Assembly (NCBI GenBank): GCA_965240325.2
Contig: OZ251222.1
Coordinates: 248,001-312,000, forward strand
Origin: Rebecca billardiae RCC1528
Taxonomy: Eukaryota > Protista > Haptophyta
Length of the DNA stretch: 64,000 bases
Direction: 5' to 3'
Shown here: one piece after another, positions 38,171-47,137 of the stretch
Numbering within the stretch: position 1 is the stretch's first letter
Layout of the letters: every line of letters begins with the position of its first letter
The notes under the pieces: model-generated
Database searches by the model: none
What the model was told of the DNA's origin: nothing
Seen by the model: the letters and a program-made list of their open reading frames with translations, nothing else
Translations under genes and position numbers: made by a program

Positions 38171-38531
38171 CGGTGCCTAAGTAGAACGCGTTGGCGCGTT
38201 GCGGTTGCCGCCCGACCGCCGACGCGCCAGCGCCCGGTGGAATTTGAATTTAGCAAGTGATGATGGCATGATGCCCGGTGCGGCGGCGGCGCCTTGATCC
38301 GTCATCAACTCATCATCGTTGATGTCCGATTGCCGGCCGACTCGTCGAAAAAGAAAAGCAGCCTTTTTGCCTTTTTCTGATTTTCTCGCCACGCGCCCCC
38401 GCCCGCCAAATCGCGGATTCGCGGACGACAGACATCGTGGCGACGACCGCCCTCGTCTGTGTCGCGCGGCGAGGGGGCGCCGGCCGCGAGGCAGGGGACT
38501 GGACGGCTGCAGGCAGTGAGGGGAGATTCAG

Positions 38532-40170
38532 ATGGCCGCCCCATCGCCGCGCCCGGCCCACCCGGGCGGCGCGGTGCCAGCCGCGCACGGCAGCTCGCTT
38601 TCTCTCAAGGGTGCGCGTCTCAGCGGGCGCAACGCTGCGACGGCTGCGCGCGGCGCGCATCGCTGCGCCCGTTGCGGCTCGTCTGACCGTGCGCGTGGCG
38701 CCGCGCGCCGCGCGAACCGCAGTGATGCGACTCTGCAAGCCGTCGTTCTCGACCGAACTGCCCCTGCCCAACGATCCGGTGGCGCTGGGCGCGCGCACGC
38801 CGGGTGGCGCGAGTTCTGTCTCCGCGGCCGCGAGCCTCCCGCTCGCCACCTCCGCGTCGCTCACCCTCCCGCAGTCGTTCGGCAACATCTACCTCGGCGA
38901 GACGTTCTGCGCGTACGTCTCCGTGTGCAACCAGGCGGCCCACCTGCTCAACGGCCTCGGCCTGAAGGTGGAGGTGCAGACATCGAGCCAGCGCCAGCTG
39001 CTGCTCAACAACGCGCCGACCGGTCCGAGCGCGACGCTTGCGCCCGCCGGGCGCGCCGACGTGATCGTGCGGTACGAGCTGCGTGAGGTGGGCATCCACA
39101 TCCTGATCTGCTCGGCCTCGTACGTCGACGCCGACGGCGAGGCGCGCAACCTGCGCAAGTTCTTCAAGTTCCAGGTGCAGAACCCGCTTTCGATGAAGTC
39201 CAAGTCACACACACTCTCGGCCGGCACGCCAGACGAGGCGGTGATTGTCGAGACGCAGGTGCAGAACGCGACCGCGGGCGCGCTCCACCTGACCAGCGTG
39301 CGCTTCAGCCCCGCGCCCGGCCTCGCCGTGGACGACCTCAACCGGCTCGGCGAGAGCGTCGACCAGCTCGCGCGGCTCAAGCCGGGCGACGTGCAGCAGT
39401 ACATGTACCGGCTGCGCTGCGCGCCGTCTGCCTCGGCGGCCGCGCTCGCCGCCGCCGCCGCGCTCGGCCGCATGGAGGTGCACTGGCGCGGCCCGATGGG
39501 CGAGGGCGGACACTTGCAGAGCAACACCGTGCAGCGCCGCCAGCAGCCGCCGCGCGCGCTCGAGGTGACGCTTCTCGCCGTCGAGCTGCTCAGCGATGCG
39601 TCCGGCGACGCCGAGGCGGCCGAGACGCCCGAGGCGGCGGCCGGGCTGGCAGGCTGCCTCGCCGTGGCGTGCGAGACGCCGTTCGTGCTGCGCTGCCGCG
39701 TGACCAACCGGTCAGAGCGCGAGCAGGAGCTGAGCGTGAGCTGGGCGCAGCCATCCCCGCCTCCGCAGCAGCCTGGCGCGGCGCCGCCGGCCGTCGGTGC
39801 GGCCGCAGCCCCGCCGCCGCCGGCGAGCGTGCCTGCCGACCCGCGCGGCTCCGCGGTGCCTGAGCTCGTGTACACGGGCGTGATCGGCGCTGAGGTCGGC
39901 GTGCTGGCGCCCGGCGCCTCCACTGAGCTGCGGCTCGAGCTCGTGGCACTCGCGCCGGGCCTGCACAAGCTGAGCGGCCTCGTGCTCGTCGACCGGAGGG
40001 CGAATGTCTCGCATGAGGCGGGCGCCATCGGAGAGATCCTCGTGTTGAGCGGAGGCACCGCCGACCTCCCCGGTGGCGGGCACGTCTCGGCGGCGGCTGC
40101 AATGGCAGGAGATGTCCCGGACGCTGCTGCCAGCGGTGCCGGTGTGCCGCGGCTCGGTGTTGCGGCATGA
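38532..40170 (+). CDS. TRAPPC13: Trafficking protein particle complex subunit 13, join(38532..38610,38723..40170)
   Basis: The intron at 38611-38722 creates the conserved LSLKVMRLCKP. Also LPQSFGNIYLGETF, RKFFKFQVQNPL and WRGPMGEGGHLQS. Confidence 0.92.
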
Positions 40171-40593
40171 TGCCGCTATATTATGCCAGGCGCCGCGCGG
40201 CCCCGGCCGCGACAGCTACTACGACGATCTGGATGGAGCTAGTGGATTGAGAACAATGCCGATGGGCTCCGGCTTCGGTCCACCCCCCCCAGTCCGGTCA
40301 GTGGAGCGTTACATCTTGACACTGCAATCGGCGGGATCGCCGCCTCTGATGATGATCTACAATAGCTCCTAGCCCACCCCATCAGGCGGTCCGCCTCGGA
40401 CGCCATATAATCGGGCCAGATGCGGATCATCGCGTCCTATAAGCCACACCTGGCCAATAGGCGGTTCAGACTCTATTTTCTGTAACTAGATACCCAGTCC
40501 GGGTATCATTTTCGCATATGCATGCAGGTATCCGGAACGCTCCCGCACTGTGCTGAAATCTGAGTAAGGGACGGGTAATTGCATAGTAAAAAT

Positions 40594-41052
40594 GGCTCTG
40601 GCTCCGGTTGACCCCTGCCAGTCCGGTCATAGAAACCGGGCGTACCGAAAATGATCTTCGCATTCCTGCGGCCGAATGAACGCCCGAAGTGTCCCACAGG
40701 GCCCCAAGTAGGGTTGCTATGGATGGCCAATAAGTGCCCAGGGAGTGAAACTCAGTTTATGACTACTTCAGACTCTATTTTTCATAGCTATTTACCCAAT
40801 CCGGTGATACATTTCAAATAGCTACGGGTGCATCCGGATCGCTCCCGGACCGTGTTCTGACCAGAGTCTGAAATGGGTAAATACATAGTAAAAATAGAGT
40901 CTGAACTATGGAGGAAGTGCTTGTTGGCCCAATATCGCTCTGAAGTCATCATCTAGGCATCCATTGAGGTCCTCCTGTGCAGTTTTCACGAGTGACTTCA
41001 TGAAGGAGCTCACAGTGCCCGTCTCTGGCAGGGGTCAACCGAAGCCAGAGCC
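40594..41052. mobile_element. MITE-like element T, copy 1 (459 bp, 28-bp TIRs, apparent AAAT target-site duplication)
   Basis: TIR GGCTCTGGCTCCGGTTGACCCCTGCCAG / CTGGCAGGGGTCAACCGAAGCCAGAGCC with one mismatch. AAAT at 40590-93 and 41053-56. No coding capacity. Confidence 0.85.
40766..40906. mobile_element. MITE-like element M (141 bp, ~33-bp imperfect TIRs, TA flanks) inside T
   Basis: ttcagactctatttttcatagctatttaccca ... tgggtaaatacatagtaaaaatagagtctgaac, with TA on both sides. A second copy at 41597-41749 is also TA-flanked. Confidence 0.8.
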
Positions 41053-41416
41053 AAATAGAGTCTGAACCTATTGGGAGGTGGTCGGATGCGACATTTCTCG
41101 TTGAAGTCATCAATCGGGGGTCGGAAGGGACTCTGCTGCATGGTCCGCTTGGTTGACTTCGGCTCGGGGCCAAGACGTAACGGAGCTGGGGGGGGGGGTG
41201 GACCGGAGCCGGAGCCGATGAGTGATGCCGGCGTGAGTAGACGTGATTCGTCGGCTGATTCGCGTGGCGGCATCATCGCCGTGACGTCGTCGTTGTTGAT
41301 GATGGCTCAGCCTCATCCTGGCTCAGACGTCACTGGCAGGCACACCGTGGTATATCATATACTCGGATAGCACTTAGCAGTAGTCGTCGTCGTGACGATG
41401 CGGCCGATGGCTACTC

Positions 41417-41961
41417 GGCTCTGGCTTCGTTCGACCCCTGCCAGAGACGGGCACTGTGAGCTCCTTCATGAAGTCACTCGTGAAATAAACTGCACAGGAG
41501 GACCTCAATGACAATGGATGCCTAGCTAGATGATGACTTCAGACGAGCGATAGTCCGGGGCCAACAAGCACTACTTATAATTATAATTCCTCTATAGTTC
41601 AGACTCTATTTTACTATGTATTTACGACCCATTTCGGACTCTGGTCAGAACACGGTCCGGGAGCGATCCGGATGCATACGTACTACGTAGCTATTGGAAA
41701 TATGTCACTCGGACTGGGTAAATAGCTATGCGGAAAATAGAGTCTGAACTAGTCACAAACTCGGATGTTCACACCCTGGGCCACTTATTGGCCATCCATA
41801 GCAACCCCACTTCGCACTTGGGGGCCCTGTGGCGGACACTTCGGGCGCTCATTCGGCCGCGCGCAGGAATGCGATGATCATTTTCGGTACGCCCGGTTTC
41901 TAAATTCTATGACCGGACTCGGGGCAGGGGTCCGCAACCGGAGCCGCAGGCCCAGAGCGCC
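41417..41961. mobile_element. MITE-like element T, copy 2 (inverted, expanded by many micro-insertions)
   Basis: Colinear reverse complement of 40594-41052 along its whole length, including the nested M. Confidence 0.88.
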
Positions 41962-42161
41962 GCACTCGGTCTGTCGAGACTGATGCAGTGATAACTCATG
42001 ACGATCACTACTATATATATATATATATATATATTATAATATATAGCATTGATGATACCGTCTGAATCGGCGAGGCTGGCAGCAGTCTCATCAAGCAGTC
42101 TCTGAGTCGACAGTCGTCATCGATAATTAATCGGCCGATATAAGACGACATCGTCCGACTG

Positions 42162-45100
42162 TCACTGTTCAGCGCAGCTACGACACATGATTCGTCGGTG
42201 TCGGCCCAGCAGGCCAGCTCTCCCGCCGGCAGCGTCACCGGCGTCGCCGGGCTCGGCCTCGGCGGACGGAGCCTGTGCGCAGCGCGCCTCGTCGCGCTCG
42301 GCCATATATGCCTGGACTCCTGGAGGCGCGCCCCGCTGCCGGAGGGCGCGCCACTCGCCCGGCGTGCGCAAGCCGTCGGTCAGCTGCGCCAGCGGCACCC
42401 GCACCGCCGCCATCGTGCAGTCGTTCACACCGTACCCGAGCATCAGCTCATACTGAGGCGGTGCTGAGGCGGTGGGCGCCGACGTGGAGGCGGAGCCGGC
42501 GGCGGCACTGCCATCGGCGGGGCCGCGGCTGCTGTCGGGCCGACCGGCCTCGGGTGTGCCCGCCCCGCGTGCGCCGGCGTCGGGTGCGGCTGGCAGCAGC
42601 TGCAGCGAGAGCACGCGCTGGATGGTCTCGCACTCAGCGCTCTGCGCCAAGGAGGCCGCGCCCGTCTGCGGCGCTGCGCTCCACGGCCTCGCCGCCGCCG
42701 AGCGCAGCGCGGGCAGGCACCACTCCGGCCCCACGCGGCGCAGCGCGAACGGCGGGCGCGCGTCCACCGTGAAGGCGAGGTGCGTGTAGTGGTGGCCATC
42801 CTTGGCCCAGCTGCGGCCCAGCTGCGCGCGCGCAAGCGCGGAGAGATTGGCGGCGCGCTGCTCGCCGCCACCAACCTCGCCGGCACCGTCAGCGCCCTCG
42901 CCGCCGAGCGCTGCGGCGGGTGGCGGCTGTGCCGCCAGTGTGGGCGAGGGCCGGTCCAGCCGGCCGACGCAGAGCAGCTCCTCGCCACCAGGCAGCGGCA
43001 CCGGGCCGGCGGACAGGCGCACGCGCGACGACCACGCCGCGGGCAGCGACGCCCACGCGCGCGCCGCGCCGTCGAGCCGTGCCGCGCCCTCGGCGCTCAG
43101 GCCCGCACCGCCGCCGCCGCCGCCGCCCGGCGCGCCGCCCGGCGCCAGCGGCACGAGTGGCAGCGCGCGCTCGGGCAGCAGGCTGGCCAAGCGCAGCTCG
43201 GCGCGGCCTGGGTGCCGCCGGACGCGCGCGTCGACGCGCACGGCGAGCGGCGCCGGCGCCAGCGTCCACAGCAGGTGCAGCGCGCCGCCGTGCCAGAAGG
43301 GCAGCTGGTGGCGCTCGCTGAGCCCGCTGGACAGTCCGGTGCCCCGGGCCACGGCCGCAGAGACGTTCAGGTACCCGCCGCGCGTGTCGGCGAGCAGGCG
43401 CGCGCGCAGCGCGCACGCGGAGCCGTCGGCGGCCAGCGGCGCGTCCTTGACGCACTCCAGACCCAGCGGCGCCACGGACACCACCGCCGTCTGCTCGGCG
43501 CTCCCCCACGGCCCGCTCTGCCGCAGGCCGCACGTGCACGCGCCCCACAGCCCGCCGCCGCCGCCGCCGCCGCCGTCGGCGTCGGGCTCGCGGAAGAGGC
43601 GGCACTCCTTGAGAGAACGGCAGCGGCGCGGCAGCAGCACTGGCCCGCGCGCCAGCTCCACCAGCGACGCGTCGAGCAGCGCGACGGCGCACGCGTCCGT
43701 CTTGCCGAGCTGCGAGGCGGGGCCGCGCGCCGCCCAGCCCGCGTGCCGCGGCGCGCGCAGCGTGCCGCCCGCGCGCGCACACTGGCCCTCGCTCGACGTG
43801 AAGAGAGACACGAACGCCGCGGTGGGCACGCCGAGCGCGGCCGCCTCCTCCAGCCGCAGCGACGCGTAAGCGGCGTTCCAGCCGTCGAAGCGCGGCGTGG
43901 GCTCGGCCGGGCCCGCCGACGTGCGCAGCACGAGCGGCGCGCGGCACGGCGGGCCGCCGCCGGCACCACCGCCACCGCCGCCGCCCGGCTCGTCGCCGGC
44001 GTTGCTGCCGGCCGCGCCTGGCCGCGCGCCGGGCTCACACAGGGCGAGCGGCGGGCACAGCGCGAGCTCGCCCGCCTCGAGTGGGCCCACGCCGTACAGG
44101 GACGAGTCTTTGGGTGGCGGGGACGAGGGAGGCGATGCGCGTTGCTTCGAGGCACCGTCACCCTGGGCTTTCTCCGCTGTGGCCTCGGTCTTGTTCGCCG
44201 TAGCCTCGGTCGCGCTCGCCGTGGCGTTCACTGTGCCGCGGTGCGCCTTTTGACGCGCCGCCGCTTGGCCGCGCGGGGGCGTGCAGTGGTGGTCGATCAG
44301 GCACGTGCGGCCGGTCCACGCCTGCAGCATCGGCGTACAGCAGTCCCACGGGAACGGGGAGCCGTACGTCTTCTTAAATGCCCTCTCCTGCTTTGCGCTC
44401 GTGGGTCTCATCTCCTTGCAGTTGAACGCGCCGCCCAGCGCGAGCACGCGCGCGCCCGTCGCGCGGAGCGAGCGCCACAGCGGCGGCTGGTCCATCACCT
44501 CGATGGCGGACGAGGTCGGGCCGCACCGGCTCTTGGCGTACGGGAAGCTCAGCCCCTCCGTGCACGGCGCGCTCGCGAACGAGCGCACCGCGCCCTCGTA
44601 CTCCTCCGCCCAGCGCGCCCACAGCCGGTCTGTTCTTGGCGTGCGCCGCCAGAACAGGACGCCACCGTTCACGCGCACGTCGGCGAGGCAGCCGGCAAAG
44701 GAGGGCTTTTCGCCGTCGGGGGTATGGCAGCCGAAGCCGTAGCCCGCAACGTCGTACGCGCCGCCGAGCATCGCCTCGACCGCGAGCAGCACCGCGCGCG
44801 CGTTGCCGCAGAAGTGCGTGTCCGTGTCCACAAAGAGAGAGAAGTCGTACGGCGAGCGCATGATCGCAGCGATCTTGTGCCGGCGCTCGCCGAGGAGCGT
44901 GCGGTTGGGCAGCAGCGAGAGGGGCTCAGGGACGTGGCCCGACAGCACGGCGAGCTCCACGCCGCGCCACGCCGCTGTCCGGCCCATGCTGTTGAGCACG
45001 TCCACGCCCTCGGCCGACGTGAAGAGCGTCACGGCCACGCCCGCCTTGCGCGCTTCGAGCGCGGCGGCGAACGCCTTGCGCACGTAGCCCTCTTCGCCGA

Positions 45101-45215
45101 CCGCCGCAAAGACGACTCCATGCGACGTTTTCCGCAGCGCGATCGGGATCGCGCCGCACCGCAGCCAGCACAGCCCGAGCAGCAGCAGCACACCGCGCGA
45201 GTGGTGGGCCAGCAT
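42162..45215 (-). CDS. Secretory-pathway glycosyltransferase: GT-A/DxD domain plus C-terminal beta-propeller-like carbohydrate-active domain
   Basis: Signal/anchor VLLLLGLCWL. KIAAIMRSPYDFSLFVDTDTHFC, VNGGVLFWR and DQPPLWRSL in the first domain. C-terminal YTHLAFTVDARPPF...EWCLP...LMLGYGVNDC. Confidence 0.7.
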   Translation of the reverse strand: MLAHHSRGVLLLLGLCWLRCGAIPIALRKTSHGVVFAAVGEEGYVRKAFAAALEARKAGVAVTLFTSAEGVDVLNSMGRTAAWRGVELAVLSGHVPEPLSLLPNRTLLGERRHKIAAIMRSPYDFSLFVDTDTHFCGNARAVLLAVEAMLGGAYDVAGYGFGCHTPDGEKPSFAGCLADVRVNGGVLFWRRTPRTDRLWARWAEEYEGAVRSFASAPCTEGLSFPYAKSRCGPTSSAIEVMDQPPLWRSLRATGARVLALGGAFNCKEMRPTSAKQERAFKKTYGSPFPWDCCTPMLQAWTGRTCLIDHHCTPPRGQAAARQKAHRGTVNATASATEATANKTEATAEKAQGDGASKQRASPPSSPPPKDSSLYGVGPLEAGELALCPPLALCEPGARPGAAGSNAGDEPGGGGGGGAGGGPPCRAPLVLRTSAGPAEPTPRFDGWNAAYASLRLEEAAALGVPTAAFVSLFTSSEGQCARAGGTLRAPRHAGWAARGPASQLGKTDACAVALLDASLVELARGPVLLPRRCRSLKECRLFREPDADGGGGGGGGLWGACTCGLRQSGPWGSAEQTAVVSVAPLGLECVKDAPLAADGSACALRARLLADTRGGYLNVSAAVARGTGLSSGLSERHQLPFWHGGALHLLWTLAPAPLAVRVDARVRRHPGRAELRLASLLPERALPLVPLAPGGAPGGGGGGGAGLSAEGAARLDGAARAWASLPAAWSSRVRLSAGPVPLPGGEELLCVGRLDRPSPTLAAQPPPAAALGGEGADGAGEVGGGEQRAANLSALARAQLGRSWAKDGHHYTHLAFTVDARPPFALRRVGPEWCLPALRSAAARPWSAAPQTGAASLAQSAECETIQRVLSLQLLPAAPDAGARGAGTPEAGRPDSSRGPADGSAAAGSASTSAPTASAPPQYELMLGYGVNDCTMAAVRVPLAQLTDGLRTPGEWRALRQRGAPPGVQAYMAERDEARCAQAPSAEAEPGDAGDAAGGRAGLLGRHRRIMCRSCAEQ

Positions 45216-45385
45216 CGTTTTCGCGACCAAGCATTTCGTCGATATCAAATCGTCATTACCTCCGTACGTAGTCATCAATTCATTACAGTTAAACTGTACT
45301 AAGAATAAGAGACGCACAGTATCGATCGGCGGAGGGCTCCAGCAAGTATGTACCTCTGCAGCGTTGGGGGGCGCCTGCCTCGGCA

Positions 45386-47137
45386 ATGGCGGCGAGCATG
45401 CACCGCCGCGCCGGCGGTGCGAGGGCGCATCCCGCTCGATCGCCCGCTCGCCGCCACGCGCGCGTCGCCCTCGCGCTCGCACTTCTCGCCGCCGTCGACG
45501 GTGTCGCGCTCGCGCCCGCCCGCCGCTGGCGGCTGTACACGTACGACGTGCCGCTCGAGGCGCTTGGCGTGCCCGCGCCCGCCGCCGAGCGCTACCGCGC
45601 GCGCGTGCGCGAGGGGCCGACGCGCGCGCCGTGGGACGTGGGTGGCGTCGCGCAATCGCTCGCGCGCGAGCTGCCGCGCGTGATGCCCGCGTGGGCCCCG
45701 CCGCGCCCTCCGCGGCCGGGCGTCAGCTGGTCCGACCCCGGGCGGGTGCTGTACTTCCTGCCGGTCGCGCCGTTCGTGCTGTGCATGAGCACAGCAGAGC
45801 ACCGCAACGCCTCGTTCGTCGACACGAACGGGATGGCAAAGGGCATGTTCCCGTGGCTCACGGGCCACCTCGCCATGGGCGCCGCCTCCAAGCGCTGCGA
45901 GCTCGACGCGCGCCGGCTCTGCCCCGCGTACGCGGCCGTTCTGGAGTGGCTGGTGGCGCAGCCGAGCTGGGCGGGGCGCGAGCACCTGCACGTGGTGCCC
46001 GCCTCCTTCTCGGCGGACGTGCCGCGCGCGGCGTTCGCGTGCGCCGAGCGCCGCGCCATCCCCGAGGCGCAGCGCCCCGTGCTCGCGCGCCTCGCCCGCT
46101 CCATCCTCCTGTCGATGGAGGGCCGCACGTGGGCGTGGCGCGCGGACGTGGCCGCGGGCCGGCTGGTGCATCTGCCCTACTACGTGCCGCCCGAGCACTA
46201 CCTGCTCTCCGCGCGCGCAGAGGAGCTGCCCTCGCGCAAGCCCTCGCGCGTCGCGCTGGTGACGGTGCAGCCCAAGGCGTGCCATCGCTTCGACGACCCG
46301 ACGCGGCCAGACGCGCTCCACTGCGCCACCTCCGCCGCCGCCCTTGCCGCGATCGACAAAGGGCTCGGCACGCCGCCCGCGGACGTGCCGCCCGCCGACG
46401 TGCGCGCCGCGCTCGCGCTCGCCGTCAAGCACGCGACCACCGGCCGCCCCGTGCACTATGGCCTGCGCAACATGCTGCGCAAGCCGAGCGCGGCGGTCGC
46501 CTCCTTCGGCGCAGAGTACCGCCGCGCCACGTTCACGCTCGTCCCACCGGGCGACACGCTCACCTCCTCGCGCATACACGGCGCACTCGCCGCGCTCTCG
46601 ATCCCGGTGTTCCTCGTGCCGCTCGGCGTGCTGCCGTTCCGGCACACCGTGCCGTGGGAGGCGCTCTCCGTGCAGCTCTCGCCCGCCGCCGTCCTGAAGT
46701 ACGCCGCCGAGTGGGAGCGTCTCGGCGGCGGCGGCGGCGGCGGGGCCCACGGCACGGGCGCAGAGGCCTGCGGGGGAGAGCGGCTGGAGAGCGAGTGCGC
46801 GCGCGCGCGCGCGCTGCACCTCGAGCGGCACAACCCGCTCCGCGCCCTCGAGCGCCTCGAGCGCGAGGCACCGGAGCGCGTGGCGCGCATGCAGTCGCTG
46901 CTCGCGCGCCACCGCTGGAGCGTGCTGTACCACAACGGCTCGGAGGCGCTCAAAGCCGTCGTGCCGTTCGACGAGGCGGACGCCGAGGCGCGTGGCGGCG
47001 TGCCGCCGAGCGAGTGGCCCTCCGCAGCGAGGAGCCTCGCCGCCGAGCTCGTGATCGCTGGCGAGCGCCGGCTGCGCACGCACGCCGATGACGGCGCCAT
47101 GCATCAGCCCAAGGCGGCGCCGGGCGCGGTGCGCTGA
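45386..47137 (+). CDS. Exostosin family (GT47) glycosyltransferase
   Basis: N-terminal TM anchor, LYTYDVP, WAGREHLHV and ATFTLVPPGDTLTSSRIHGALAALSIPV...LPF...PW. Confidence 0.85.
   Translation: MAASMHRRAGGARAHPARSPARRHARVALALALLAAVDGVALAPARRWRLYTYDVPLEALGVPAPAAERYRARVREGPTRAPWDVGGVAQSLARELPRVMPAWAPPRPPRPGVSWSDPGRVLYFLPVAPFVLCMSTAEHRNASFVDTNGMAKGMFPWLTGHLAMGAASKRCELDARRLCPAYAAVLEWLVAQPSWAGREHLHVVPASFSADVPRAAFACAERRAIPEAQRPVLARLARSILLSMEGRTWAWRADVAAGRLVHLPYYVPPEHYLLSARAEELPSRKPSRVALVTVQPKACHRFDDPTRPDALHCATSAAALAAIDKGLGTPPADVPPADVRAALALAVKHATTGRPVHYGLRNMLRKPSAAVASFGAEYRRATFTLVPPGDTLTSSRIHGALAALSIPVFLVPLGVLPFRHTVPWEALSVQLSPAAVLKYAAEWERLGGGGGGGAHGTGAEACGGERLESECARARALHLERHNPLRALERLEREAPERVARMQSLLARHRWSVLYHNGSEALKAVVPFDEADAEARGGVPPSEWPSAARSLAAELVIAGERRLRTHADDGAMHQPKAAPGAVR

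Follow-up and report, generated by a model that had tools for sequence, protein, structure and literature searches.

Probable self-nesting of a single MITE family in an AT-richer intergenic spacer of the haptophyte Rebecca billardiae

A dense cluster of inverted repeats in the genome of Rebecca billardiae RCC1528 raises the question of whether two transposon families insert into each other or whether one family inserts into itself. The cluster lies in a stretch of 64,000 nucleotides (the window), which is part of contig 1 in an assembly of 72 Mb and 41 contigs. An earlier note, made from the letters of this stretch only, had described the cluster as reciprocal nesting of two non-autonomous families, T and M, in which M sits inside T and T inside another copy of M.

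The GC content of the window is about 72% and drops to 55-56% at 40-42 kb, where the element cluster occupies a 2-kb AT-richer spacer separating two convergent frames. The left neighbour is a TRAPPC13-like gene (38437..40170, + strand; Pfam TRAPPC13_N, _M and _C, E-values from 9e-38 to 5e-15), and a gap of 94 bp separates the end of its open frame from the start of T0, the first of the elements described below. To the right stands a long open frame with no family match (42162..45482, - strand); as this frame is on the opposite strand, the cluster sits between the 3' ends of the two. Inside the cluster no open frames of at least 100 aa were found, and an Rfam scan of it returned nothing relevant. 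A (TA)n-rich palindromic tract at 42004-42053 immediately adjoins the cluster on its right; a match to mir-3688 at this tract is weak, sub-threshold and probably meaningless.

All the structures that the note lists are present in the sequence. T1, a young copy of 459 bp, occupies 40594..41052 on the + strand, where it is delimited by its inverted repeat and matched by a 100% identical copy on contig 7. Its inverted ends of 28 bp (40594-40621 and 41025-41052) complement each other at 27 of the 28 positions, and an AAAT target duplication can be read from the sequence on the left (40590..40593) and on the right (41053-41056). Within T1, a core module of 141 bp delimited by its inverted repeat, M1 (40766..40906, +), has 35-nt inverted arms that are 86% complementary, with TA on either side. 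A second unit of this type, M2, is a direct repeat 71% identical to M1; its left 130 bp are found at 40464..40593 (+) and its last 11 bp at 41057-41067, beyond T1, which splits M2 in its right arm as had been claimed.

The older inverted repeat said to enclose this assembly is present and does enclose it, but it proved to be the T-type end pair of another element with its own duplication. This element, T0 (40265..41216, +), is an older T-family member of a diverged subfamily, identified by end-to-end alignment with T1. Without T1, which splits it, T0 amounts to 489 bp, with ends at 40265-40300 and 41189-41216 that are 83% and 71% identical to those of T1, a GATG target duplication read on the left (40261..40264) and the right (41217-41220), and a 4.5% difference from its subfamily consensus. 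When T1 and one AAAT are removed in silico the core-module arm of T0 is intact again, and T0 aligns with T1 over the full length, M2 taking in T0 the same internal place that M1 takes in T1.

The inverted second copy of T, noted about 365 bp away, is T2, an older T1-type copy of 547 bp on the - strand (41417..41963) that is 91% identical to T1. It starts 364 bp past the end of T1 and 200 bp to the right of T0, carries its own core module (~41597-41749, -) and, compared with the T1-type consensus, shows 7.2% substitutions and 17 small insertions. Its right border is most likely 41963 and not 41961 as first given; placed there, the element is flanked by an ACTC duplication (41413-41416 and 41964-41967), although both border and duplication are less certain than the others because the right end of T2 is degenerate.

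A region rich in inverted repeats, in which T2 lies inverted near T1, could conceivably reflect local rearrangement, palindromic duplication or an assembly artefact instead of serial insertions. Such an origin is barely credible, given that T0, T1 and T2 each have their own, different 4-bp duplication, that T1 and T2 differ by 9%, that taking out T1 with one AAAT leaves T0 exactly in the family pattern, and that the same element structure occurs at dozens of loci.

The ends of T are distributed genome-wide and are not confined to this locus. The 28-nt end pattern of T1 gave 204 matches in the whole genome at up to 3 mismatches, against 0 in a reversed control, and the T0-type end pattern gave 159 against 0 in its control. 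About 100 T1-type copies are present, of which at least 40 are full-length and 84-100% identical to T1 (from 270 first-look candidates); the T0 subfamily contributes about 80 or more (136 first-look candidates, 79-95% identity), which brings the T family to about 180 or more copies. Elements measure 459-586 bp, each end opens with two GGCTCY hexamers, and the termini are GG...CC; the end sequence for comparison with transposase-bearing elements is GGCTCYGGCTYCGG. A metagenome scan for the T end motif gave a single chance match of 22 nt. One T copy was seen within a tandem satellite that repeats every ~110 bp (L004, contig 31).

The target duplication of other T copies is consistent in length. 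It is a perfect 4 bp in 27 of the 41 elements with both ends found, with three of the four bases agreeing in seven further elements; relatives of T0 elsewhere also have 4-bp duplications, and this length is common to both subfamilies. No consensus emerges from the duplicated bases, and GC content is 49% across the 24-bp target sites compared with 72% in the window. The possibility left by the earlier note, a 2-bp AA duplication with the inverted end extended by one base, is excluded since the base adjoining the element end varies among copies. Inverted ends and a constant-length duplication in small, non-coding, multi-copy elements are the features by which MITEs are recognised. A foldback structure of the whole element was considered and rejected, the inverted repeats being the ends and the core arms only. 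The identical copy on contig 7 has unrelated flanks and an AGTC duplication, which points to a very recent transposition of T1. Judged by copy structure and identity, T is a genuine MITE family, recently and apparently still active.

The base composition of the copies was recorded as well. T1 has 51% GC and a CpG observed/expected ratio of 0.66, the older T2 has 53% and 0.97, and T0, of the other subfamily, has 57% and 0.88, while the CpG ratio of the window is 1.33. In 34 aligned T1-type copies A>G and T>C make up most of the substitutions relative to the consensus, and excess decay of CpG sites is absent. T elements seem to drift toward the base composition of the host.

The answer to the initial question depends on the status of M. 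If M were an independent TA-duplicating (Stowaway-like) family, and M and T were currently inserting in each other, this would account for the TA on both sides of M1, for the clear 35-nt inverted arms of M and for the abundance of the M arm pattern, which has 296 matches genome-wide against 0 in the control. T-family arms, however, flank every M copy examined. M arms are present in 47 of 47 extracted T-family end pairs, always at the same internal position, and T-family arms adjoin M at all 23 further M sites sampled (20 outside the T1 copies listed, drawn from the first 100 of the 296 matches, and three other loci), so that no solitary M occurs among these 47 elements and 23 sites. With two arms per element, a T family of about 180 or more copies fully explains the number of arm matches. 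Furthermore, the M segment is covered by 40 of the 40 T1 matches listed, as expected of one inherited state and not of repeated insertions; the predicted M-less junction, an empty-site palindrome, has no match genome-wide when up to 3 mismatches are allowed, and no M-less form of the T family was found. Two mutually inserting families are thus very unlikely. Because M occupies the same site of the T family in every copy examined and T0 aligns with T1, the presence of M in T is inherited and the apparent insertion of T in M is T1 inside T0, the supposed host copy of M being the core of T0. Reciprocal nesting of T and M has to be given up accordingly; of the two non-autonomous families that had been proposed, T stands as a real mobile family and M does not stand as a second, independent, TA-targeting one.

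On alignment grounds, M can be described as an old, relatively conserved part of the T family, a central module of ~140 bp with its own inverted arms. Between the two subfamily consensuses identity is 75% in M, 83% and 71% in the ends, and 44% and 61% in the arms. In the T0 type the inverted repeat extends ~14 nt past the proposed border of M, which is therefore without a distinct edge there. The module would have been retained either by being needed for transposition or by being already present in the common ancestor.

An older, separate origin of M is a doubtful but reasonable alternative. Both subfamilies have TA on either side of M and, when M is taken out, the flanks close into a perfect palindrome; these features may fit an ancient Tc1/mariner-type insertion into an ancestor of the T family. 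M would then be a former miniature element of that type which made a single insertion, into a TA of the ancestor's palindromic centre, and has been only a passenger since. Against this history, neither an M-less relative nor a solitary M was found, and M is conserved like the ends, as a neutral passenger need not be. T elements, moreover, have concentric inverted repeats anyway, so the longer repeat may be simply part of the element.

With M as the conserved middle part of the T family, the arrangement becomes an ordinary nested insertion. The locus is read here, with a probability of about 0.8, as three insertions of one non-autonomous cut-and-paste DNA transposon family in an intergenic spacer, and what it displays is in all likelihood the self-nesting of this single family and not the reciprocal nesting of two. 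T0, the older subfamily copy, would have inserted first with duplication of GATG; T2, a T1-type copy, would have followed 200 bp off in inverted orientation with duplication of ACTC; and the young T1 would recently have inserted in the right arm of the central module of T0 with duplication of AAAT.

The further suggestion that AT-richer elements serve as each other's safe landing sites agrees with a general pattern, in that targets are AT-richer and other elements interrupt about 20-40% of end pairs. A preference for T or M as targets is not supported by the counts: a T element was found inside another T-family copy in only 1 of about 41 cases, no more than AT-rich spacer DNA by itself might yield. 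End pairs 1.3-4.3 kb apart make up about a fifth of the exact T1 pairs and about 5 of the 12 exact T0-type pairs. The insertions splitting the long T pairs that were read are unrelated sequence, mostly elements with their own inverted ends, and in at least 10 of 30 T copies the flanking sequence turns up again at other extracted loci.

Among the individual cases, a T copy on contig 14 (L061) contains a 1.7-kb repeat, and on contig 31 another copy of that repeat is interrupted in its turn by a T copy, which duplicated TGAT (L011); this pair of loci is true reciprocal nesting. A second group of 4-bp-duplicating elements is represented by L063:976-2661 (CTGG) and L083:77-951 (TTGA), whose ends read GACNNGTTGCA, with CGG coming next in three of the four ends; a T1 end hosts one of the two elements and a T0-type arm hosts the other. 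At L066:601-1973, L062, L064 and L065, T copies contain additional unrelated elements that are 1.3-1.9 kb long and have inverted ends, and one T-inserted element of 1373 bp was seen twice, at 98% identity.

Small insertions were also compared among T1-type copies (L001-L087 and window 41417-41963). Small insertions private to one copy are more than 10 times as frequent as deletions (about 154 events against 13), and copy length grows with substitution divergence (Spearman 0.73). Among the insertions of at least 4 bp (n=77), 31 begin by repeating 3-8 nt of the flank downstream and then continue with a few bases of filler, where 3.7 would be expected, and independent copies have been hit at identical sites, the filler differing between them. 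These duplication-plus-filler insertions look like excision footprints of transposons or scars of templated end joining; were they excision footprints, T copies would lengthen with age instead of shrinking. A more speculative and rather improbable extension is that T copies are preferred landing pads for the many cut-and-paste transposons of this genome, that the micro-insertions are their excision footprints, and that the conserved central module is functional in transposition (for instance as a transposase-binding site or a hairpin), within a 4-bp-duplicating superfamily whose enzyme is not yet described in this lineage.

Judging by structure, the T family would be moved by a DDE/DDD transposase that cuts the target with a 4-nt stagger. 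Among six long end pairs that were read no transposase-encoding partner with T-type ends was found. In each of these six (L061-L066, 1.8-4.3 kb) a MITE copy is interrupted by other sequence; four of the inserts have their own inverted ends and two are without defined ends, and the large open frames within the inserts gave 0 matches in a Pfam scan. Beyond these six, further long end pairs lie on contig 21 (689862-693250), contig 3 (802543-805154), contig 17 (450250-452734) and contig 18 (239295-241247). An exact T end without MITE-type inner sequence was met only once, and that end is itself interrupted by an insertion; the T-type terminal 14-mer shows no excess elsewhere (14 matches against 32 in the control). 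The three piggyBac-like genes of the genome were considered as partners and rejected because the element ends differ (TCAC... versus GGC); T-type ends are absent within 1.5 kb of each. As a separate observation, a piggyBac-like element on contigs 37 and 19 (L089 and L091) has an intact frame of 585 aa in each copy; the two copies share 99.8% identity along more than 3.87 kb, and one end begins TCAC.

As a transposon family T is new but of a familiar kind, its nested arrangement is ordinary, and since nested MITEs have long been known the locus itself is unsurprising. One well-defined MITE family with two subfamilies is added to the catalogued repeats of a very GC-rich eukaryote, and an over-reading is corrected, as an internal inverted-repeat module can mimic a nested second element. 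Two wider points are possibly worth a genome-wide study: the high rate of element-in-element insertion and the insertion-biased scars of duplication plus filler.

In comparison with known superfamilies, T shares the 4-bp length of its duplication with piggyBac and Kolobok, both of which duplicate TTAA, and its GG...CC termini fit the RR...YY rule of Kolobok ends (PMC9587614). The duplications of T are nevertheless diverse and not TTAA, which rules out typical piggyBac; TTAA occurs in 0 of 29 tabulated T-family duplications, which rules out typical Kolobok; and the two readable, identical piggyBac-like copies in this genome begin TCA. Ginger, with TG...CA ends (PMC10741241), is rejected by the GG...CC ends of T, and PIF/Harbinger (Tourist), with a 3-bp duplication (PMC4561436), by the 4-bp duplication of T and its lack of TWA. 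Sola elements make 4-bp duplications, encode a DDD transposase and have very variable ends of 11-1124 bp, the duplications of Sola2 being AWWT-like (PMC10741241, PMC3627910). T resembles them in duplication length, in its AT-richer targets and in its 28-bp ends, which fall within the Sola range; it differs from Sola2 in having no consensus in the duplicated bases, and the match is one of duplication and not of a linked Sola transposase. A Sola-like affiliation is a candidate left by elimination, by duplication length only.

Among miniature elements, Tourist duplications have the consensus TWA and those of Stowaway are TA. Stowaway is excluded for T by duplication length (PMC4561436). M resembles Stowaway in its size of ~140 bp, its inverted arms and the TA on both sides, but independent TA-duplicated copies number 0 among the 23 sampled sites and 47 elements, and the TA flanks of M are one inherited site. 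The closest parallel in arrangement comes from plants, for which nested MITEs or multimers are well described, with frequent self-insertion in some families (PMC5172404); more than 10% of 6,600 rice MITEs are reported to be multimers (Jiang and Wessler 2001, via PMC5172404). The T elements are likewise small, non-autonomous, inverted-repeat elements inserting in one another; in contrast to the plant cases, however, they reside in a very GC-rich host genome of 72 Mb and duplicate 4 bp of their target instead of TA or TWA.
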